From: Tubulanus polymorphus
Taxonomy: Eukaryota > Animalia > Nemertea
Direction of reading: 5' to 3'
Length of the DNA: 64,000 nucleotides
Assembly (NCBI RefSeq): GCF_964204645.1
Contig: NC_134036.1
Span: 2,046,001-2,110,000, forward strand
Part shown: piece by piece, positions 1 to 14,777 of the stretch
How positions within the stretch are numbered: the first letter of the stretch is position 1
How the letters are laid out: every line of letters begins with the position of its first letter
Program-made: the position numbers and the translations under genes
The notes under the pieces: generated by a model
What the model was told of the DNA's origin: nothing
The model's database searches: none
Seen by the model: the letters and a program-made list of their open reading frames with translations, nothing else

Positions 1-185
1 TATTGAGGTCTATGGCCCACACATAACATCATAAATTGGTCAGGAAATAAAGTGTTTTGTGGTATAGATGACACGTTTGTACGATTTTACACTGTAAATT
101 TATCATTTTTCAGGACTTTCAGGACCTAAAATCGGCAATATTTTTGATACAAACTGAGAAAGTATCAAAACATTTGAGAACGCGT

Positions 186-496
186 TCAATGTGGAAGATT
201 CCGGACTAACATTTGATCCACTTGCGGGGTCCCCGTGTATAATCAATGATAAACATGTATTACTATCGGTAAACTCTGGGACTGGTAACAAAGGAGCCGT
301 GATTAGTATGAGATATAATGATGAGGGGTTTATAGATCACCCGCGTATAGTATTGAACTCTACTGACAGTGTGACAGGTGAGATACACAAAATATGTGAC
401 AGTAACACTGTAGTTATCCGTCACTTGGATAACAGTAATAAACCGGACTCACTGCGAGTTTATAATATAAACACTGTACTCACTCGTACAAAATAG
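186..496 (+). pseudogene. 5'-truncated copy of the tandem propeller gene (last ~100 codons)
   Basis: Matches 4785-5095 from TCAATGTGGAAGAT onward. Upstream 1-185 is unrelated and has an in-frame TGA at 155-157. Confidence 0.8.
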
Positions 497-736
497 AAAT
501 TCGGTTTTAATCAAACATGATATAACACGTTTCATCAAGGATTAAATCCATAGATAGTCAAAATATGTGGATTTTTTAAAAGTTAAAGAATGTATCTTTT
601 TAGGACCTGTTTATGGAATGAGACTCTCATTCATTCTATTACGTAATATATCATAACAGAAAAAAAAAAACTTAAGAAGAAAGAATTTGACGAAAGAAGT
701 CATTACTATTAGAATTATTGTGAGAATGTAATCAAT

Positions 737-937
737 GCCGTGATTAGTATGAGATATAATGATGAGGGGTTTATAGATCATCCGCGTATAGTATTGAACT
801 CTGCAGACAATGCGACATTAGAGATACACAAAGTGTGTGACAGTAACACTGTAGTTATCCATCACCGGGATATCAGTAGTAAACAGGACTCACTGCGAGC
901 TTATAATATAAACACTGTACTCACTCGTACACAATAA
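737..937 (+). pseudogene. Duplicated 3'-end cassette (last ~65 codons of the propeller gene), frame still open
   Basis: AVISMRYNDEGFIDHPRIVLNS...YNINTVLTRTQ* repeats the gene end ~440 bp downstream. No pyrimidine-rich acceptor precedes it. Confidence 0.8.
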
Positions 938-3050: not shown

Positions 3051-3188
3051 CTGGTTCTTGCCGCGCCCGTCTTTTGTACAGTTACTATTTAGAGAAGGCA
3101 AACCATAACCCTGGGACTAATATCACCTGACTGTTCTACGCCCAAACCGCATTCAGTTCATTTGTGGTGTTAATTACTGACGGTCAAC

Positions 3189-5095
3189 ATGGCTACAAGT
3201 AATCCGGATCGTTTCGAGATTTCCGTACCTTTCAAAGGACGTCGCGTTACCGTTTGGTCCGATCAGGATAATGAGTACAGAACGATACAAAATTACTTTT
3301 ATCAGCCATTGTTTAATTTGGAATCTGATCGAATAACTGCGGATGGAAATATATTACAACTTGATATAACTCTGTGGTGTGAAGAATTAGAGGCTGCTAT
3401 TGAACAAAAACTAAAAACCATCTATACAAGTCACGTAATAGCGGTGCAGATGATGCCGTTTGATGAGGTAAGAATCTGTAATTCTCATCTTCAGTTTCAT
3501 CATCACCCGCGTGTGATACTAGACGGGTGACCACTGCGAGGTGAGAGTCAAATAGAAAAAATCTTTTTATATTTCAGGTGAAATTAGAATGGGGAGATGC
3601 GCCCTCTGGTGTGGAGATACCGAATCATCCGATCCCGTTCAATCATCAACCTCAGAATCACGTGTTTATCGTTAAATGTGAAAATGAAGAAATGTGTGAA
3701 ATCTACAAATCGCGACTTCAACAATCTCCGCAATCAATAGGTTCGGGTCTTGTGATCGGTGCTAGTCGTCACGGGAACGAATACGTGTTTAGAGTGAACA
3801 CTGTACCGATCAGTGAAGCGCGAACAGTTCAACCAGACATTGATCAACGTCATAATTCCCAAATCGACAATGTGAAACTGTTTCAAGATAATTTAGAAAA
3901 TCAATTCTCTCAATTAAAACGCACAGTTGAAGAGAGACTGAACCGGTGCTGTACTGAACAACAACTTGAAGAAAGGCTGAACCGGTTCTGTACTGAACAA
4001 CAACTTGAAGAGAGGCTGAACCGGTTCTGTACTGAACAACAACTTGAAGAGAGGCTGAACCGGTGCTGTACTGAACAACAACTTGAAGAGAGGCTGAACC
4101 GGTGCTGTACTGAACAACAACTTGAAGCATTAGAAGTTAAACTGAACAACGCTATCGATGACGTCACAGGGAGAGTGGATGAAGTGGAGAGTTCTATTGG
4201 TGTCGTCATTGATTCATTAACGATCAGTAAACAGGTTCAGACAGATTTCTCACCTGACCTAGCGAACTCATTACCTGGTGAGCAGACGGGTAAACAGTCA
4301 CGTATAATATGTGCGGACATCTGGGGGCCCAATGATATATATTACATGGATGATAATGATGTAATGAAGAGATATATAGAGTGTGATGGTGATGATTGTT
4401 TACTAGGACTCGATACAGATAGTAACGGTCACCTGTTTGTAGTCGTGGAGAAAAACGAGAAACTCTTCCTGAGAAAATATAAAGATCAGGACAAAGTGTT
4501 AGAGGAAGATGTCACTGATATTGTGTCTGAATGTGGAACACTAGTCATTCGTGGTAACAATATTTACATCAAGTCAGGAAGAGACGTTCATGTTTTACGT
4601 TTACTAGAAAACCCTGTAAATAGTTTGATTGATAGAAACCGTGTGAAAAAATATCAGCTCCCGGATGGAGAGTACGAATATATCAAATGTTTAGATGTCG
4701 ACACGCGGGGACGCATGTTTGTATACTGTAATAGATCGGGAAGATTACTCTATCTAACAGCTGATGCGGAATTGATCAGTTTTATCAATGTGGAAGATTC
4801 CGGACTAACATTTGATCCACTTGCGGGGTCCCCGTGTATAATCAATGATAAACATGTATTATTATCGGTAAACTGTGAGACTGGTAACAAAGGAGCCGTG
4901 ATTAGTATGAGATATAATGATGAGGGGTTCATAGATCACCCGCGTATAGTATTGAACTCTACTGACAGTGTGACAAATGAGATACACAAAATATGTGACA
5001 GTAACACTGTAGTTATCCGTCACTGGGATAACAGTAATAAACCGCACTCGCTGCGAGTTTATAATATAAACACTGTACTCACTCGTACACAATAA
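3189..5095 (+). CDS. Uncharacterised 598-aa protein, copy A: join(3189..3467,3578..5095); unnamed N-terminal domain + 13-aa-repeat coiled coil + NHL-like beta-propeller
   Basis: Phase-0 intron GAG|GTAAGA (3468) ... TTTCAG|GTG (3577) joins the 113-aa and 505-aa ORFs in frame. Start context CAACATGG. Blade-like motifs GLDTDSNGHLFVV and LDVDTRGRMFVYC. No signal peptide. Confidence 0.85.
3929..4123 (+). repeat. Coding 39-bp tandem repeat x5 (EERLNR[C/F]CTEQQL)
   Basis: GAAGAGAGGCTGAACCGGT[G/T]CTGTACTGAACAACAACTT units, read directly. Confidence 0.97.
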
Positions 5096-5340
5096 ACACC
5101 CGGTTTTAATCAAACATTATATAACACGTATCATTCGAGATTAAATCCATAGATAGTCGAAATATGTGAATTTTTTAAAAGTTAAAGAATGTATCTTTTT
5201 AGGACCTGTTTATGGAATGAGACTCTCATTCATTCTATTACGTTATATATCATAACAGAAAAAAAAGACTAAAAGTTAAGAAGAAAGAATTTGACGAAAA
5301 AAGTCATTACTATTAGAATTATTGTGAGAATGTAATGAAT

Positions 5341-5541
5341 GCCGTGATTGGTATGAGATATAACGATGAGGGGTTCATAGATCACCCGCGTATAGTATTG
5401 AACTCTGCAGACACTGCGACATTAGAGATACACAAAATATGTGACAGTAACGCTGTAGTTATCCGTCACTGGGATAACAGTAGTAAACAGGACTCACTGC
5501 GAGCTTATAATATAAACACTGTACTCACTCGTACACAATAA
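5341..5541 (+). pseudogene. Second duplicated 3'-end cassette, frame open
   Basis: AVIGMRYNDEGF...YNINTVLTRTQ*; homologous to 737-937 and to 4895-5095. Confidence 0.8.
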
Positions 5542-7790
5542 AAACCCTAAAAGCTCTGTAAGTTGGACATTAGACATATATGAAGTGTGTAACAGTTTGA
5601 GTTATCCGTCACTAGGATAAAAGTAATAAACCGAATAATGTAAACACTTCATAAAATAGAAACCAGTTTTAACCTGATTTTATATCAAGTATGAGACTAA
5701 CGGTTACGATAACGTTTAGTGATTTAGCGTTTGACGTCACGAATGTCTGTGTAATTAAATCGCTAATAAAGTCGTACATTTAACGGGGATTTCAAAAAGC
5801 CGTTTTGAGGTTTAACTAATTTATCAAAGAATGAATTATTTTAAGTAGTTAAGAAACGTTAACTTGAAATCTATTTCAAAGCACATTCATAATTTTGGTG
5901 AAAGTGGGGCATAAGTTCTTAATGGTAAATACGTAATCCACGCTTAAAATTAATTTCCTACTAGCGGTTTTATAGACTGGTATTAACTTTAGTCTGGGGG
6001 TTAACTATATTCATTTTTAATTTTGTTAACCCCCGGGTTGAAGTTGACACCAGTCTATAAAATAAGCCCCTTCAATTTTATTCCCACGAAATTTTCTGAG
6101 CATGTTCACTCAACAAAACAGGAAAATGATCTGAAATTCTTTTTTGAGATTTGACGTTATTTTGGGCTGTTTCTTGTGAAGCAAAATCAAATCACTGAGT
6201 TGAGGAGTTCTACCCTAATCTGTTAGTAATAATTGGAACTTATGGGATTTTCCGACTCACTAAGTTTTCGAGTTTAACATATTAAACTAATTATGATATA
6301 ACACGTTTCATTCGGGATTCAATGCATATATAATCAAAATGTGGATTTTTTAAAAGTGAAAGAATTTAAGGTTTTTTGAAACCTGTTTGCGGAATGTGAC
6401 TTTTCAGTCATACCATTACGTAATATAATATAAAAGAAAAGAGACTAAAAGTTGAGAAGAGAAAATTTTTATGAAAAAAGTAATTATCATTAGAATTATT
6501 GTAAGAATGTAATTAATCATGATTGTATTGTAAAAAGCTAATATATTGACGAAATGATAATTATTAGAATTATAATAATAATGTGATTAACTATAATTGT
6601 ATCGTCAAAAAAGAAAATATAACAAAAATAATTATTATGATCATCAACCAGTTGTAATTTCCGCTTTATTCTTTTTTCTCTCTGGTCTTCTGTATAACAT
6701 CAGGTCACTGGATCATCCTGAGGTCAGATGCACAGTCATTGCTTAGAAGACCATTTTAATTATGTTGCCAATCTAACGAATTGCCCTGCAATGCGTGCAG
6801 TGCAGGAAACGGACAAGGCCGTCCAATAAATAGCACCATTGAGGCTTGTTAAAGGGCCAATGATGAGTTTTGTAAAATAACCACAAATAAGTGTTTTTGA
6901 TAAAAATGATATAAATTTTCGATGACAAAAATTTGTCGAAAAATCAATAAAATTATTATTGGAGAGGATTTTTAAATAAGTAATTTCGACCTCGGTGAAT
7001 CCGGAAGTATGACTGACGTCACCTACAGAACAGCAACATCAACAAACATTGAAAAAACAGGGCGGGTAATTCAGAAGGGTTGTCGCATTTTTATGGACGA
7101 ATTGCAACAATTCTCGCTCAAATAGTTTTGAAGATTAGTTTTCTTTTCTTGAATTTTGAATTGAAAACGAATGCGATTCGTCTTTGAAAACAAATTCAAT
7201 AAGACCCTGGACATATCACGTGACTGTTCTTATAAAAGACCCGAGTTGATTACTGACGTCATTATCTAGTTCATAGAAAAACCGTTTTATCTGTATCTAT
7301 AAGATTTATCTGCGTCACTAGATCTGATAATCGGGTCTGTATTTCAAATTAGCGGTATTGTTTATTTAGATTATTATGACGTCATAACATTCGCGCACCT
7401 AGATAGTTCACGTGTTTGGCGTAAAGGTCGCTGAAGGTTGCGACTCTGTACCTTCGTGGGGGGTTCAAAATACCGATCAGTCACGTGGTTAGAATCAGAC
7501 ACTGTGAATGATATCAATTCACTTTTTTGTGTTGGTAGCAACAACAGTTAAAAACGACTTCAATTGTTAATTTTGTTTTAAGTTACGTGTTTGTATTATG
7601 TCTGTATCTATTGACGACGACCTATTTATCAAACGGTAAAATGGCGGCAGAACAGGTTCTGGCCGCGCCCGTCTTTTGTACAGTTACTATTTAGAGAAGG
7701 CAAACCAGAACCCTGGGACTAATATCACCTGACTGTTCTACGCCCAAACCGCATTCAGTTCATTTGTGGTGTTAATTACTGACGGTCAAC

Positions 7791-9682
7791 ATGGCTACAA
7801 GTAATCCGGATCGTTTCGAGATTTCCGTACCTTTCAAAGGACGTCGCGTTACCGTTTGGTCCGATCAGGATAATGAGTACAGAACGATACAAAATTACTT
7901 TTATCAGCCGTTGTTTAATTTGGAATCTGATCGAATAACTGCGGATGGAAATATATTACAACTTGATATAACTCTGTGGTGTGAAGAATTAGAGGCTGCT
8001 ATTAAACACGAACTAAAAACCATCTATACAGGTCACGTAATAGCGGTGCAGATGATGCCGATTGATGAGGTAAGAATCTGTAATTCTCATCTTCAGTTTC
8101 ATCATCACCCGCGTGTGATACTAGACGGGTGACCACTGCGAGGTGAGAGTCAAATAGAAAAAATCTTTTTATATTTCAGGTGAAATTAGAATGGAGAGAT
8201 GCGCCCTCTGGTGTGGAGATACCGAATCATCCGATCCCGTTCAATCATCAACCTCAGAATCACGTGTTTATCGTTAAATGTGAAAATGAAGAAATGTGTG
8301 AAATCTACAAATCGCGACTTCAACAATCTCCGCAATCAATAGGTTCGGGTCTTGTGATCGGTGCTAGTCGTCACGGGAACGAATACGTGTTTAGAGTGAA
8401 CACTGTACCGATCAGTGAAGCGCGAACAGTTCAACCAGACATTGATCAACGTCATCATTCCCTAATTGACAATGTCAAACTGTTTCATGATAATTTAGAA
8501 AATCAATTCTCTCAATTGAAGCACACAGTTGAAGAGAGACTGAACCGGTTCTGTACTGAACAACAACTTGAAGAGAGACTGAACCGGTTCTGTACTGGAC
8601 AACAACTTGAAGAGAGGCTGAACCGGTGCTGTACTGAACAACAACTTGAAGAGAGGCTGAACCGGTTCTGTACTGAACAACAACTTGCAGCATTGGAAGT
8701 AAAACTGAATAAGACTATCGATGACGTCACAGGAAGAACAATCAATGATGTCATAGGGAGAATAGATAAATTGGAGATATCTATTGGTGACGTCATTGAT
8801 TCATTAACGATCAGTAAACAGGTTGAGACAGACTTCAGATCTGAGCTAGTGACGTCATTACCTGGTGAGCAGACGGGTAAACAGTCACGTATAATATGTG
8901 CGGCCTACTGGGGGTCCAGTAATATATATTACATGGATGATAATGATGTAATGAAGAGATATATAGAGTGTGTTGGTGGTGATTGTTTACTAGGACTCGA
9001 TACAGATAGTAACGGTCACCTGTTTGTAGTCGTGAAGAAAAACAAGAAACTCTGCCTGAGAAAATATAAAGATCAGGACAAAGTGTTAGAGGAAGATGTC
9101 ACTGATATTGTGTCTAGATGTGGAACACTAGTTATTCGCGGTAACAATATTTACATCCAGTCAAGTAGAGACGTTCGTGTTTTACGTCTATTAGAAAACC
9201 CTGTAAACAGTTTAATTGATAGAAACCGTGTGAAAAAATATCAGCTCCCGGATGGAGAGTACGAATATATCAACAGTTTAGATGTCGACACGCGGGGACG
9301 CATGTTTGTATACTGTAATAGATCGGGAAGATTACTCTATCTAACAGCTGATGCGGAATTGATCAGTTTTATCAATGTGGAAGATTCCGGACTAACATTT
9401 GATCCACTTGAGGGGTCCCCGTGTATAATCAATGATAAACATGTATTATTATCGGTAAACTCTAGGACTGGTAACAAAGGAGCCGTGATTAGTATGAGAT
9501 ATAATGATGAGGGGTTTATAGATCACCCGCGTATAGTATTGAACTCTACTGACAGTGTGACATATGAGATACACAAAATATGTGACAGTAACACTGTAGT
9601 TATCCGTCACTGGGTTATCAATAATAAAACGGAGTCACTGCGAGTTTATAATATAAACACTGTACCCACTCGTACAAAATAA
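7791..9682 (+). CDS. Uncharacterised 593-aa protein, copy B: join(7791..8069,8180..9682)
   Basis: Same GT-AG phase-0 intron (8070-8179). Paralog of 3189-5095 with 4 repeats and an 8-aa duplication (TINDVIGR). Confidence 0.85.
8531..8686 (+). repeat. Coding 39-bp tandem repeat x4
   Basis: Same unit as 3929-4123. Confidence 0.97.
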
Positions 9683-12193: not shown

Positions 12194-13793
12194 CCCACAA
12201 TGCCGGTCCAGGTTGCGGAGTAATTCCCCCAGGGACCTTCGATTTTTTTACAATATTAGTTTGTTATTTTAAGTTGACTGGTGAGGGTTTAGGAAATTTT
12301 TTATTTTTGTTTCGAAAAAATCCCAACGAGAATTCCGTAGATGTAATGCAGATGTAATGTAAGTAATGCAGCTATCGATCTCCAGGTAAATTGACAAAAC
12401 TTCAATGATTTTTTAAACTTCGCCAGAGTAGACTCAGAGTAGATGTGTACGCAGCGACGTCTGGTAAACGTGTGTATAAAATCGGCTAAAAACGACAATC
12501 CAATAGAGAATCGCTCACTGGAGACCTGACATACGCTCTACTACACAATAGTGCCGCGTGACTGCACAAACCCTTAGGCAAACTTCAATATTCCCGAAGC
12601 TTAACTCGAAAATAGTAAAATTGAGCCGGAATTATAGTTCAAAACAAGACGTAAATAGAAGGGAACATCTACGCTTAAGTTTGTTGGATAGTTTAGATAA
12701 ACCTGCAGTATGCAATTTTAGGCTAAAATCCTAGCATTCGGTATTCTATCTTTAACAATATGTGTCTCTATGAATAGTCGAATTAAACTCGATGACCTGT
12801 AGGTCCCATTGAAAATGTTTGGCACGAATTGAATGGTTCTCGAGGATTAGCGTCACGGACTCGGGTCTGTCACAGGAATGCGCGATCGAGCCTTCTGATT
12901 GATCCACTCCGGTCGCCTCGATGATGCAACGTCGCTGATTGGTCGACGTAGGTATTAGAAGCGCGGTTCGAGCCTCCCGATGCCAGTCCGAGAACCGATG
13001 TCCAGTGATGAAGGTTTACCTATAAGAGCTCTGCAACAAGGCGTGAAGAACGTGTGGCTTCAAGCGAACAACTTACTAATTAGCGGTTGATGATGTTAGG
13101 AGAGACTGGAACGTGATGGAATTAGTGACGCGTAGCGATTGGGAACGCCATATGAGACTGACGGCTGTTGGTGCTGACGATTGCAGAGGAGATCCCGATA
13201 CTGTTGCTGCTGCTGCTTCTGCTGTTAATGTCGGATTTCAACTACAAACCGATGACGGCTCACTTGCTGATGAGGACGAGTTGCTGGTGTTGCCGATTTC
13301 CGATGTTCTATTTCAAGATGCACACATTTTGATCAGGTTAGAAATTTCGTATAGAATTCAAAACTCTGAATCGAATCTTTCGAAAATTATCGCGTTTTGA
13401 CTGTTGAACCAAATTCGGCTTCATTTGAAGCGAAATTGCATTTTGAAATTCAAACTCAAACTCTAGTTCAGTTTTCAAATGGCTTTTGGTCTTTGTCTCC
13501 TCGGGGTTAGTCGTTTTTAGTCGCAATTTTATACATTATGAATATTGTGTCTTTTTAGGGTTAAACCGAAACCAGTTCGCTATTACTGACAACTACATGT
13601 ACACGACTCGTTTGTCGCAACGTCCTGAACTAGTTTGCTGCTGCGGCTGCTGTATTGGGAACAGCATCAACCCACATGCTGTTTCGGTTTCTTTACATCA
13701 AGATAAGGTTATTAAATTAAACTGCACCCATCCGGAATCGTTCTCCAGTTCATCCGATTTCTTTTTCAGCCGGCAATATCTGAGGGCGAGTTA

Positions 13794-14441
13794 CATCTTC
13801 AAACCTCGAGACGCAGACTCCACTCCGACTACAGCACCATATTCAAACCTCGAGACGCAGACTCCACTCCGACTACAGCACCATATTCAAACCTCGAGAC
13901 GCAGACTCCACTCCGACTACAGCACCATATTCAAACCTCGAGACGCAGACTCCACTCCGACTACAGCACCATATTCAAACCTCGAGACGCAGACTCTACT
14001 CCCGACTACGGCACCATCTTCAAACCTGGAGACGCAGACTCTACTCCCGACTACAGCAACATCTTCAAACCTGGAGACGCAGACTCTACTCCCGACTACG
14101 GCACCATCTTCAAACCTCGAGACGCAGACTCTACTCCGACTACGGCACCATCTTCAAACCTCGAGACGCAGACTCTACTCCCGTCTACGGCACCATCTTC
14201 AAACCTCGAGACGCAGACTCTACTCCCGACTACAGCAACATCTTCAAACCTGGAGACGCAGACTCTACTCCCGACTACGGCACCATCTTCAAACCTCGAG
14301 ACGCAGACTCTACTCCGACTACGGCACCATCTTCAAACCTCGAGACGCAGACTCTACTCCCGTCTACGGCACCATCTTCAAACGACGCAGACTCTACTCC
14401 CGTCTACGGCACCATCTTCAAACGACGCAGACTCTACTCCG
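13794..14441. repeat. 44/45-bp minisatellite, ~15 units
   Basis: TTCAAACCTCGAGACGCAGACTC[C/T]ACTCC(C)GACTAC[A/G]GCACCAT repeats; this explains the 329-aa ORF. Confidence 0.95.
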
Positions 14442-14777
14442 TCATTATTTCGTTTTGCCGCATGTTATAAAGTAACGTAAATAAATAAACGTCCATCTAT
14501 ATATAAAATGCTCGTCTTCAATAAAATCTCTTTGTCTCTGGCACTTTGCCCCGGAAAGGACTCTTTCCGCTTACAACTTCTCACGTTCAAGGAAAGGACA
14601 AAGTCAAAAAGGAAAGTCAAAAAGGAAAGGACAAACGCAGACAAACGCAAAGTACAAATCAAAGCATTTATTCCAAATTCAAAGTAGGAATTTCTTACAG
14701 CTTGTTTGCAAAAGTAAAATTCAACATTTTATTGAAACATCAAAAATTCCAACAGCTTGTTAAGAAGTAAAAATTAT

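Follow-up and report, generated by a model that had tools for sequence, protein, structure and literature searches.

Two neighbouring genes of the palaeonemertean Tubulanus polymorphus, here called copies A (3189-5095) and B (7791-9682), lie head-to-tail in a 64,000-nucleotide stretch of a chromosome-scale contig of the 268-Mb assembly (C12:2046001-2110000; this whole stretch is the window, and positions given without a contig name refer to it). They are intact, transcribed members of a gene family specific to the T. polymorphus lineage, whose products end in a beta-propeller. Our analysis shows that selection favours amino-acid change on the top face of this propeller, that is, on its B-C turns and D-A loops, as is also the case in receptors of immune type, that this result is replicated in two arrays of such genes, and that the bottom face, the core and the N-terminal domain (N-domain) are under purifying selection. 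Going by the structural models, we think it rather probable that the family joins a constant N-domain and a repeat stalk to a propeller whose variable face senses ligands, with a response that would be driven by clustering.

Results

A six-bladed propeller by fold

We modelled the residues encoded by 4316-5092 with AlphaFold2 from an alignment of 26 paralogs, and obtained an all-beta domain with a mean confidence (predicted local distance difference test, pLDDT) of 85 and a predicted template-modelling score (pTM) of 0.84. Every Foldseek match of this model is a propeller. In comparisons with VIA the NHL domain of Mei-P26 gave Z 20.7 (root-mean-square deviation 2.6 Å, 225 residues aligned) and that of Brat Z 19.9, with 224-225 residues aligned at 2.6-2.7 Å for the two, and the YWTD propeller of megalin, at Z 20.1, is statistically tied with the NHL matches. 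Atlas matches are NHL/SGL/lactonase six-bladed domains at a TM score of 0.7, and an ESM Atlas feature search gave a weak NHL/SGL lead. The model, then, places the C-terminal domain among six-bladed propellers of the NHL/YWTD structural class, and fold searches of this domain, which the initial annotation had proposed, thus bear out the propeller that it suggested. We rejected a five-bladed reading on the ground that 225 residues superpose on six-bladed domains. There is a strand-like conserved segment just upstream of the modelled part and a further one from ~4202; from the way in which the strand-turn-strand motif recurs, 4202-4315 probably contributes the sixth blade's first two strands.

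What the initial annotation called an NHL-type propeller is so in fold, while the NHL sequence signature is missing: Pfam gave no match to PF01436 (NHL) at E <= 1 in A, B or the paralogs, and a profile search of PDB sequences with the propeller found no NHL chain and no match at all. Searched with Pfam, both exons of A and B and the paralogs gave nothing above threshold, DUF6650 and Galaxin_repeat staying below the cut-off. The kinship with NHL domains is one of fold only, not of sequence-family membership. Nor were zf-RING, zf-B_box or NACHT/NB-ARC found by Pfam in A, B or the paralogs, in agreement with the earlier statement that RING and B-box are absent.

The top structural matches are nonetheless RNA-binding NHL domains (Mei-P26, Brat, TRIM71, NHL-2) that use their top face for binding, and one could suppose that the family regulates endogenous targets, either as TRIM-NHL-like RNA binders or as adaptors that track the animal's own transposons or a fast-evolving partner. 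We regard this as improbable: the propeller of copy A has a net charge of -12, which is unfavourable for RNA, there is no NHL signature, RING or B-box, and rate ratios of 3-6 together with mosaic shuffling (both described below) are unusual in housekeeping regulators.

Variation and selection on the two faces

Over the 259 codons of the C-terminal domain (A 4316-5092, B 8903-9679) an exact recount gives 27 amino-acid differences and 8 synonymous ones, the very numbers that had been estimated by eye. The variable patches listed at that time are all present in A and B, the variants ascribed to the preceding copy 0 are found at 185-496, and the reported acidic-to-basic shift shows in the net charge (K+R minus D+E), which is -12 for A and -1 for B. 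By the Nei-Gojobori method (NG86) the whole-domain ratio of nonsynonymous to synonymous rates (dN/dS, or omega) is 1.00 (dN 0.053, dS 0.053), so that the count of 27 to 8 is no evidence of selection until the two faces of the propeller are separated.

A propeller chain is a strict up-down meander, in which the D-A and B-C loops by convention form the top face; successive loops therefore alternate between the faces. In the DSSP assignment of our model blades 1-4 have four strands each, in a register that fits an NHL-like repeat motif, and the even-numbered loops are therefore those of the top face. Assigned in this way, by loop parity, all 25 of the 25 A/B replacements in residues 1-250 are found inside even loops or beside them, which agrees with the proposal that variation is confined to the loops of one face: there are 25 replacements among 124 residues of the even-loop (top) half and none among 117 of the other half (Fisher p = 2e-8). 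There are 29.5 nonsynonymous (nd) and 1.5 synonymous (sd) differences on the top half, with omega 5.8 and dS 0.019, and on the bottom half nd is 0 and sd 6. A similar division is seen across the seven intact C12 genes, with 53 of 124 columns variable on the top half and 15 of 117 on the bottom (p = 2e-7).

An 8-gene tandem array (C12:2.003-2.056 Mb, 8 genes in 56 kb), with a unit of 4602-4603 bp, ends in copies A and B. A second, independent array has 10 genes at C8:668-714 kb (46 kb) and a unit of ~4.4 kb. Ratios of nonsynonymous to synonymous differences per site (pN/pS), pooled over the seven intact C12 genes, are 2.18 for the top face and 0.30 for the bottom; in the close group of C8 they are 2.22 and 0.93. 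For the propeller as a whole the pooled values are 1.09 (C12) and 0.93 (C8), with close pairs at 2-3.5, and for the N-domain 0.37 and 0.32.

Site models had been suggested for the paralogs, and we ran them, in our own implementation of the Goldman-Yang codon model (GY94), as M2a against M1a. The likelihood-ratio test (LRT) statistic is 81.5 for C12 and 104.6-150 for C8. In C12, M2a places 11% of sites at omega ~12, and the selected sites fall on the top half in 15 of 17 cases in C12 and 19 of 23 in C8. A partition test gives omega 3.15 for the top face (p = 1.5e-5 against 1) and 0.34 for the bottom face. Since recombination is rampant in the family, we also used five segment-specific trees, for which the summed LRT is 67.9 in C12 (p = 1e-10) and 100.8 in C8 (p = 4e-17). 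Finally, seven non-overlapping pairs compared without any tree show nd 207.5 and sd 24.5 on the top face (binomial p = 1e-5), with a bottom-face pN/pS of 0.54. The N-domain exons of these same genes, taken as a negative control, have omega 0.17-0.46 and no M2a signal. The site-model, segment-tree and tree-free tests thus agree, in C12 and in C8, on the diversifying selection that the initial annotation had proposed for the variable face.

Mosaicism and concerted evolution

As many as 61% of the informative pairs of sites do not pass the four-gamete test (pairwise homoplasy index, PHI, p = 0.03), and failure on this scale points to shuffling by gene conversion, as far as one can read it from the sequences. 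Variant patches recur in differing combinations among paralogs; the first B-C turn, for example, has its basic form in B, L004 and L009 alike. Moreover, 6 of the 8 silent A/B differences sit in codons 77-104 (~4544-4627), where the protein is identical and where the states of A recur in the more distant paralogs L007 and L010; the interval looks like a short gene-conversion tract. In C8, some pairs have identical N-domains and propellers at dN 0.15-0.2, and in C12 the spacers and the 5' half stay 97-99% identical. The picture is one of concerted evolution of spacers and 5' half, together with selection that preserves and reshuffles top-face diversity, and the array offers a clean natural example of concerted evolution plus face-restricted diversifying selection.

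Could the same pattern arise under relaxed constraint, with young redundant duplicates decaying neutrally and gene conversion from divergent paralogs importing the patches? The whole-domain dN/dS of 1.00, the clustering of silent differences in a conversion-like tract and the broken state of one array member, copy 0, would be expected in that case. We consider it very unlikely all the same, because no neutral process could bring one face to omega 2-6 and hold the other at 0-0.3 when a single exon encodes both. In addition, 17 array copies keep open frames, with N-domains constrained as stated above, and imported tracts should bring silent differences, yet the top-face dS between A and B is only 0.019.

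N-domain and stalk

For the N-domain, of ~185 residues, the fold was taken from the RefSeq protein of copy B (P0003) and not from a joined copy A, whose exons were searched separately. With distant relatives in the alignment AlphaFold2 gives an alpha/beta domain at pLDDT 90 and pTM 0.81. Foldseek against the PDB returned only matches with E > 0.05, and among 48,161 chains the best VIA match has Z 6.8, inside the noise range stated for the tool, with no TRADD-N chain in the top 50 of those 48,161. Pfam matched none of 35 N-domain sequences, and hence no DED or TRADD-N; PADLOC gave only chance-level matches to Cas6b; PDB sequence profiles gave nothing for the N-domain, its distant relatives matching through their Xlink part only; and an ESM Atlas feature search found nothing. 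The ideas of a TRADD-N or a FIIND domain were rejected on the Foldseek and VIA values. On the model, the fold appears to be a novel alpha/beta one. Only P40, W63, F123 and C127 are invariant.

Beyond the Tubulanus paralogs, a profile search of 1.84 billion representatives found 28 distant N-domain relatives (P0026-P0053; E = 1e-10 to 1e-3), which are metagenome eukaryote proteins and the tardigrade protein XP_055351149. These share a second conserved region that the Tubulanus proteins do not have; the genomic context of one of them, on a metagenome contig, was uninformative. The N-domain thus defines an uncharacterised family of domains, whose distant members occur in other animals. The initial annotation had described the N-domain as nearly invariant, which does not hold for the A/B pair, where 191 codons show 8 replacements and 2 silent changes; its constraint becomes visible only across the array as a whole (pN/pS 0.37).

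The stalk is helical and contains a 13-residue repeat with two cysteines, present in 5.2 copies in A, 4.1 in B and 4 to 8 among the paralogs, the A/B stalk difference being made up of insertions and deletions in the 39-nt repeat. In some repeats F replaces the first C. Pfam gave only weak coiled-coil-type matches on the paralog stalks.

Nemerteans are toxic predators, and venom genes typically lie in tandem arrays under positive selection. It is conceivable, then, that the family comprises secreted or extracellular proteins of lectin or toxin type, exported by an unconventional route and caught in a predator-prey or extracellular-immunity arms race. Several distant N-domain relatives have signal peptides or membrane anchors and look secreted or anchored, several have C-terminal Xlink, C1q-like or tail-collar-like domains, stalk and propeller are rich in cysteines, and coral propeller lectins under positive selection are known (PMC2880987). 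We hold this to be unlikely, if less so than the other alternatives considered here. The ATG of copy A at 3189 must be the true start, because an in-frame TAA (3171-3173) precedes it with no AG, and so no acceptor site, in between; the N-terminus is hydrophilic, and there is therefore no signal peptide, as had been claimed. Sister genes, moreover, fuse the propeller to caspases, which are cytosolic enzymes.

Gene structure, transcripts and the separateness of A and B

A gene of this family has two exons and encodes a protein of ~595 residues without signal peptide (Table 1). RefSeq LOC141914252 (P0003, 593 aa) is identical to copy B spliced at the junction that the initial annotation had predicted from copy A, an intron at 3468-3577 with GT..AG ends in phase 0. 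In run X4 a contig with GT..AG ends, at depth 272, joins 3467 to 8180; the joint reads 3467|8180 when shifted by 2, the final 26 letters of exon 1 being identical in A and B. An unspliced contig of the same run covers 3440-3531 at depth 28. Runs X2 and X3, of the same sample, have mismatch-free contigs on A-specific propeller sequence. The X4 contig and the RefSeq models support spliced transcripts. Contigs of X1 and X2 also join B-type stalk (8796) back to A-type stalk (4168), a step back of 4629, with 9 extra letters in X2; by its sequence this join could reflect a hybrid copy, another haplotype or a product of unequal crossover.

Table 1. Features of the array members in the window.
Feature	Position	Strand	Remarks
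Copy 0 tail	185..496	+	propeller residues ~167-269 and stop; tblastn against joined array; previously noted copy-0 variants present
Orphan 3'-end cassette after copy 0	713..937	+	open frame, 74 codons, last-blade-like
Copy A exon 1	3189..3467	+	93 codons, first half of constant N-domain
Copy A intron	3468..3577	+	110 nt, GT..AG, phase 0; RefSeq P0003 uses the equivalent junction in copy B
Copy A exon 2, second half of N-domain	3578..3871	+	whole exon 2 is 3578-5095; AlphaFold2 pLDDT 90 (P0003:1-185)
Copy A stalk/linker	3872..4201	+	5.2 copies of 39-nt (13-residue, di-Cys) repeat at 3927-4127
Copy A six-bladed propeller (predicted) and stop (5093-5095)	4202..5095	+	modelled part encoded by 4316-5092
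Orphan 3'-end cassette after copy A	5317..5541	+	open frame, 74 codons, last-blade-like
Copy B exon 1	7791..8069	+	RefSeq P0003 = LOC141914252
Copy B intron	8070..8179	+	RefSeq model; spliced contig
Copy B exon 2	8180..9682	+	second half of N-domain, stalk, propeller (8903-9679 equivalent to the modelled part), stop
Copy B stalk repeat	8529-8687	+	4.1 copies of 39-nt repeat

In 200-bp bins the non-coding DNA of A and B diverges by 0.5-3%, close to the ~1-2% first estimated, and the propeller bins by 3-9%. Such similarity raises the question of whether A and B are a single gene whose two haplotypes were assembled side by side, as might the spacers that are 97-99% identical and the two identical copies in C8. 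This artefact, which the initial annotation had named as a possible refutation, we find barely credible, given eight units with differing repeat numbers, one of them with a 6-kb insertion, and no runs of N; an independent 10-unit array with the same pattern; and separate RefSeq loci for the copies. Contigs of public runs, moreover, match A-specific and B-specific stretches without mismatch, though the sample may be the assembled one.

Array neighbours and further family members

Copy 0 (LOC141914253, P0005) precedes A. Its propeller is split after ~residue 168 by a ~6.1-kb insertion spanning C12:2040048-2046184 (L042:8048 to window position 184), and there the RefSeq model P0005 breaks off, in read-through sequence. 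A 4-kb stretch from the middle of the insertion (L047) holds no open reading frame of at least 150 aa.

Orphan cassettes of 74 codons occur in four of the eight units, ~240 bp past the stop; besides the two in Table 1 they lie at C12:2013380-2013601 and C12:2026728-2026949, and there is none downstream of copy B. The last blade of gene L003 bears cassette-like residues, which suggests conversion from a cassette. Values of dN/dS between cassettes rest on small counts. In the C8 array, members c8_2 and c8_4 (C8:674744-675493 and C8:683371-684120) are identical in N-domain and propeller, either through very recent duplication or through duplication in the assembly. Just past the C12 array, an open frame at 13486-14475 (+), of 329 aa, consists of tandem Thr/Pro/Leu-rich repeats of ~15 residues.

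Across the genome there are ~40 full-length genes; exon 1 has matches at 45 places, the part of the N-domain encoded by exon 2 at 44, and the propeller in more than 100 segments. Further members combine the propeller with long coiled coils, a second propeller or a caspase. Two propellers share one frame at C11:8502480-8510634, C8:756849-762726 (P0021) and C40:20555-22318, in frames of 2257, 1068 and 771 aa. In the RefSeq paralogs P0014, P0015 and P0063 the propeller is followed by Peptidase_C14 (E = 1e-57 to 1e-67); P0014 keeps the QACRG and SHG motifs, and P0016 has lost QACRG. LOC141910044 is one example of a propeller-caspase fusion. In a protein tree the caspase-fused propellers lie inside the C8 clade, among genes of the N-domain type (Shimodaira-Hasegawa-like approximate likelihood-ratio support, SH-aLRT, 99), and the propeller has therefore moved between output modules recently. 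A word-index search of 5.8 billion proteins found the propeller and close N-domains in T. polymorphus only, which is weak evidence of absence elsewhere. We found no paper that describes the family.

Discussion

How might such proteins work? We propose that the top face would be a ligand-binding surface whose specificity differs from paralog to paralog. Since the charge of this face swings from strongly acidic to neutral, the ligands would probably be proteins of pathogens or of other genetic parasites. Binding of a multivalent ligand would allow the stalk to cluster the constant N-domains, and a downstream response would follow, with proteins of the A and B type presumably acting in the cytosol. 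In the sister genes the propeller occupies the place of the usual caspase prodomain, and there clustering would be expected to activate the protease directly. We do see what one would look for in a receptor family, namely multigene tandem arrays and a dN/dS above 1 that is limited to the putative binding surface. As to a coupling with an effector or cell-death module, some paralogs fuse the propeller to Peptidase_C14; A and B themselves have only the uncharacterised N-domain.

Several points weigh against this ligand-sensing reading. Top and bottom were set by loop parity in a DSSP string, from a model that starts ~40 residues late, and not from 3-D coordinates. The code for the site models is not PAML, and heavy recombination can inflate such models, a risk that the segment-tree and tree-free tests reduce and do not remove; GC-biased gene conversion is also a possible source of change. 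A 13-residue stalk repeat is not a canonical heptad multiple or coiled-coil period. In the N-domain alignment we recognise neither a catalytic-looking polar set nor other features of an effector, and the domain is no less likely to serve in assembly or as an adaptor than as an effector. The secreted or anchored look of several distant N-domain relatives, described above, sits uneasily with a cytosolic sensor. Finally, the RNA evidence consists of the RefSeq model and one spliced contig from public runs of unrecorded kind.

More speculatively, and reading from sequence, the family may be an undescribed class of animal germline-encoded cytosolic non-self sensors, with a propeller repertoire that is shuffled combinatorially and diversified by short-tract gene conversion between members of an array, possibly also from the 3' cassettes, and that signals through a novel N-domain or a fused caspase. 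We put this forward tentatively, as a possibility that we do not ourselves expect to hold in every part. If it were true, the family would represent a new receptor architecture, in which a novel constant domain is followed by a stalk of repeats and an NHL-like propeller. The propeller-caspase fusions would then link ligand recognition directly to cell death, each being sensor and executioner in a single chain, a functional counterpart of plant and fungal NLRs made from unrelated parts. Lophotrochozoan innate immunity is poorly charted, and we found nothing on record for nemerteans.

With TRADD-N/DED, NACHT, RING/B-box and the NHL signature all missing, the family is set apart from the TRADD-N/DED, NLR and TRIM-NHL families. 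It resembles TRIM-NHL proteins (Brat, Mei-P26, TRIM2/3/71, NHL-2) in having a six-bladed propeller after a helical region (Z 19-21, deviation 2.6-3.0 Å), and in TRIM-NHL proteins ligands bind the propeller top face. However, the Tubulanus proteins have no RING, B-box or Pfam NHL, their identity to these proteins is 8-14%, and their N-domain is different and apparently novel; moreover, TRIM-NHL genes are conserved and single-copy, whereas the Tubulanus genes lie in arrays and have a hypervariable top face. Primate TRIM5alpha and fish finTRIM proteins, with their B30.2 domains, combine a coiled-coil-linked sensor, loop-restricted positive selection and tandem clusters, although their sensor is a SPRY domain instead of a propeller, with a RING E3 ligase as effector.

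Closer in overall plan are the expansions in Branchiostoma and oysters of proteins that join DED-TRADD-N, a linker and a variable WD40 propeller (Kaur, Iyer, Burroughs and Aravind 2021, PMC8195603). As in our family, a constant N-terminal module is followed by a linker and by variable C-terminal propellers, the variability is ascribed to recombination, and expansions in marine invertebrates are tied to the apoptosis machinery. The Tubulanus N-domain, in contrast, is not DED/TRADD-N by Pfam, the propeller is NHL/YWTD-like rather than WD40, and direct propeller-caspase fusions are found. In the fungal HNWD/NLR genes het-e and het-d, WD40 repeats are under diversifying selection (PMC12222747, PMC4986451). 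There too positive selection acts at a few propeller surface positions, shuffled by recombination against a conserved background, and the proteins are intracellular and linked to cell death, which for the Tubulanus family we infer from the caspase-fused paralogs and the lack of a signal peptide. Unlike HNWD genes, the Tubulanus family has no NACHT/STAND NTPase, belongs to an animal host and keeps its diversity in arrays of paralogs, not in repeats inside one gene. Coral tachylectin-2 is another invertebrate propeller protein with high amino-acid diversity and positive selection (PMC2880987), but this lectin has five blades, lacks both N-domain and stalk, and is unrelated in sequence to the Tubulanus family. 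More generally, the logic that the Tubulanus genes match is the one seen in variable-propeller expansions (PMC8195603), in fungal HNWD NLRs and in TRIM-type sensors.

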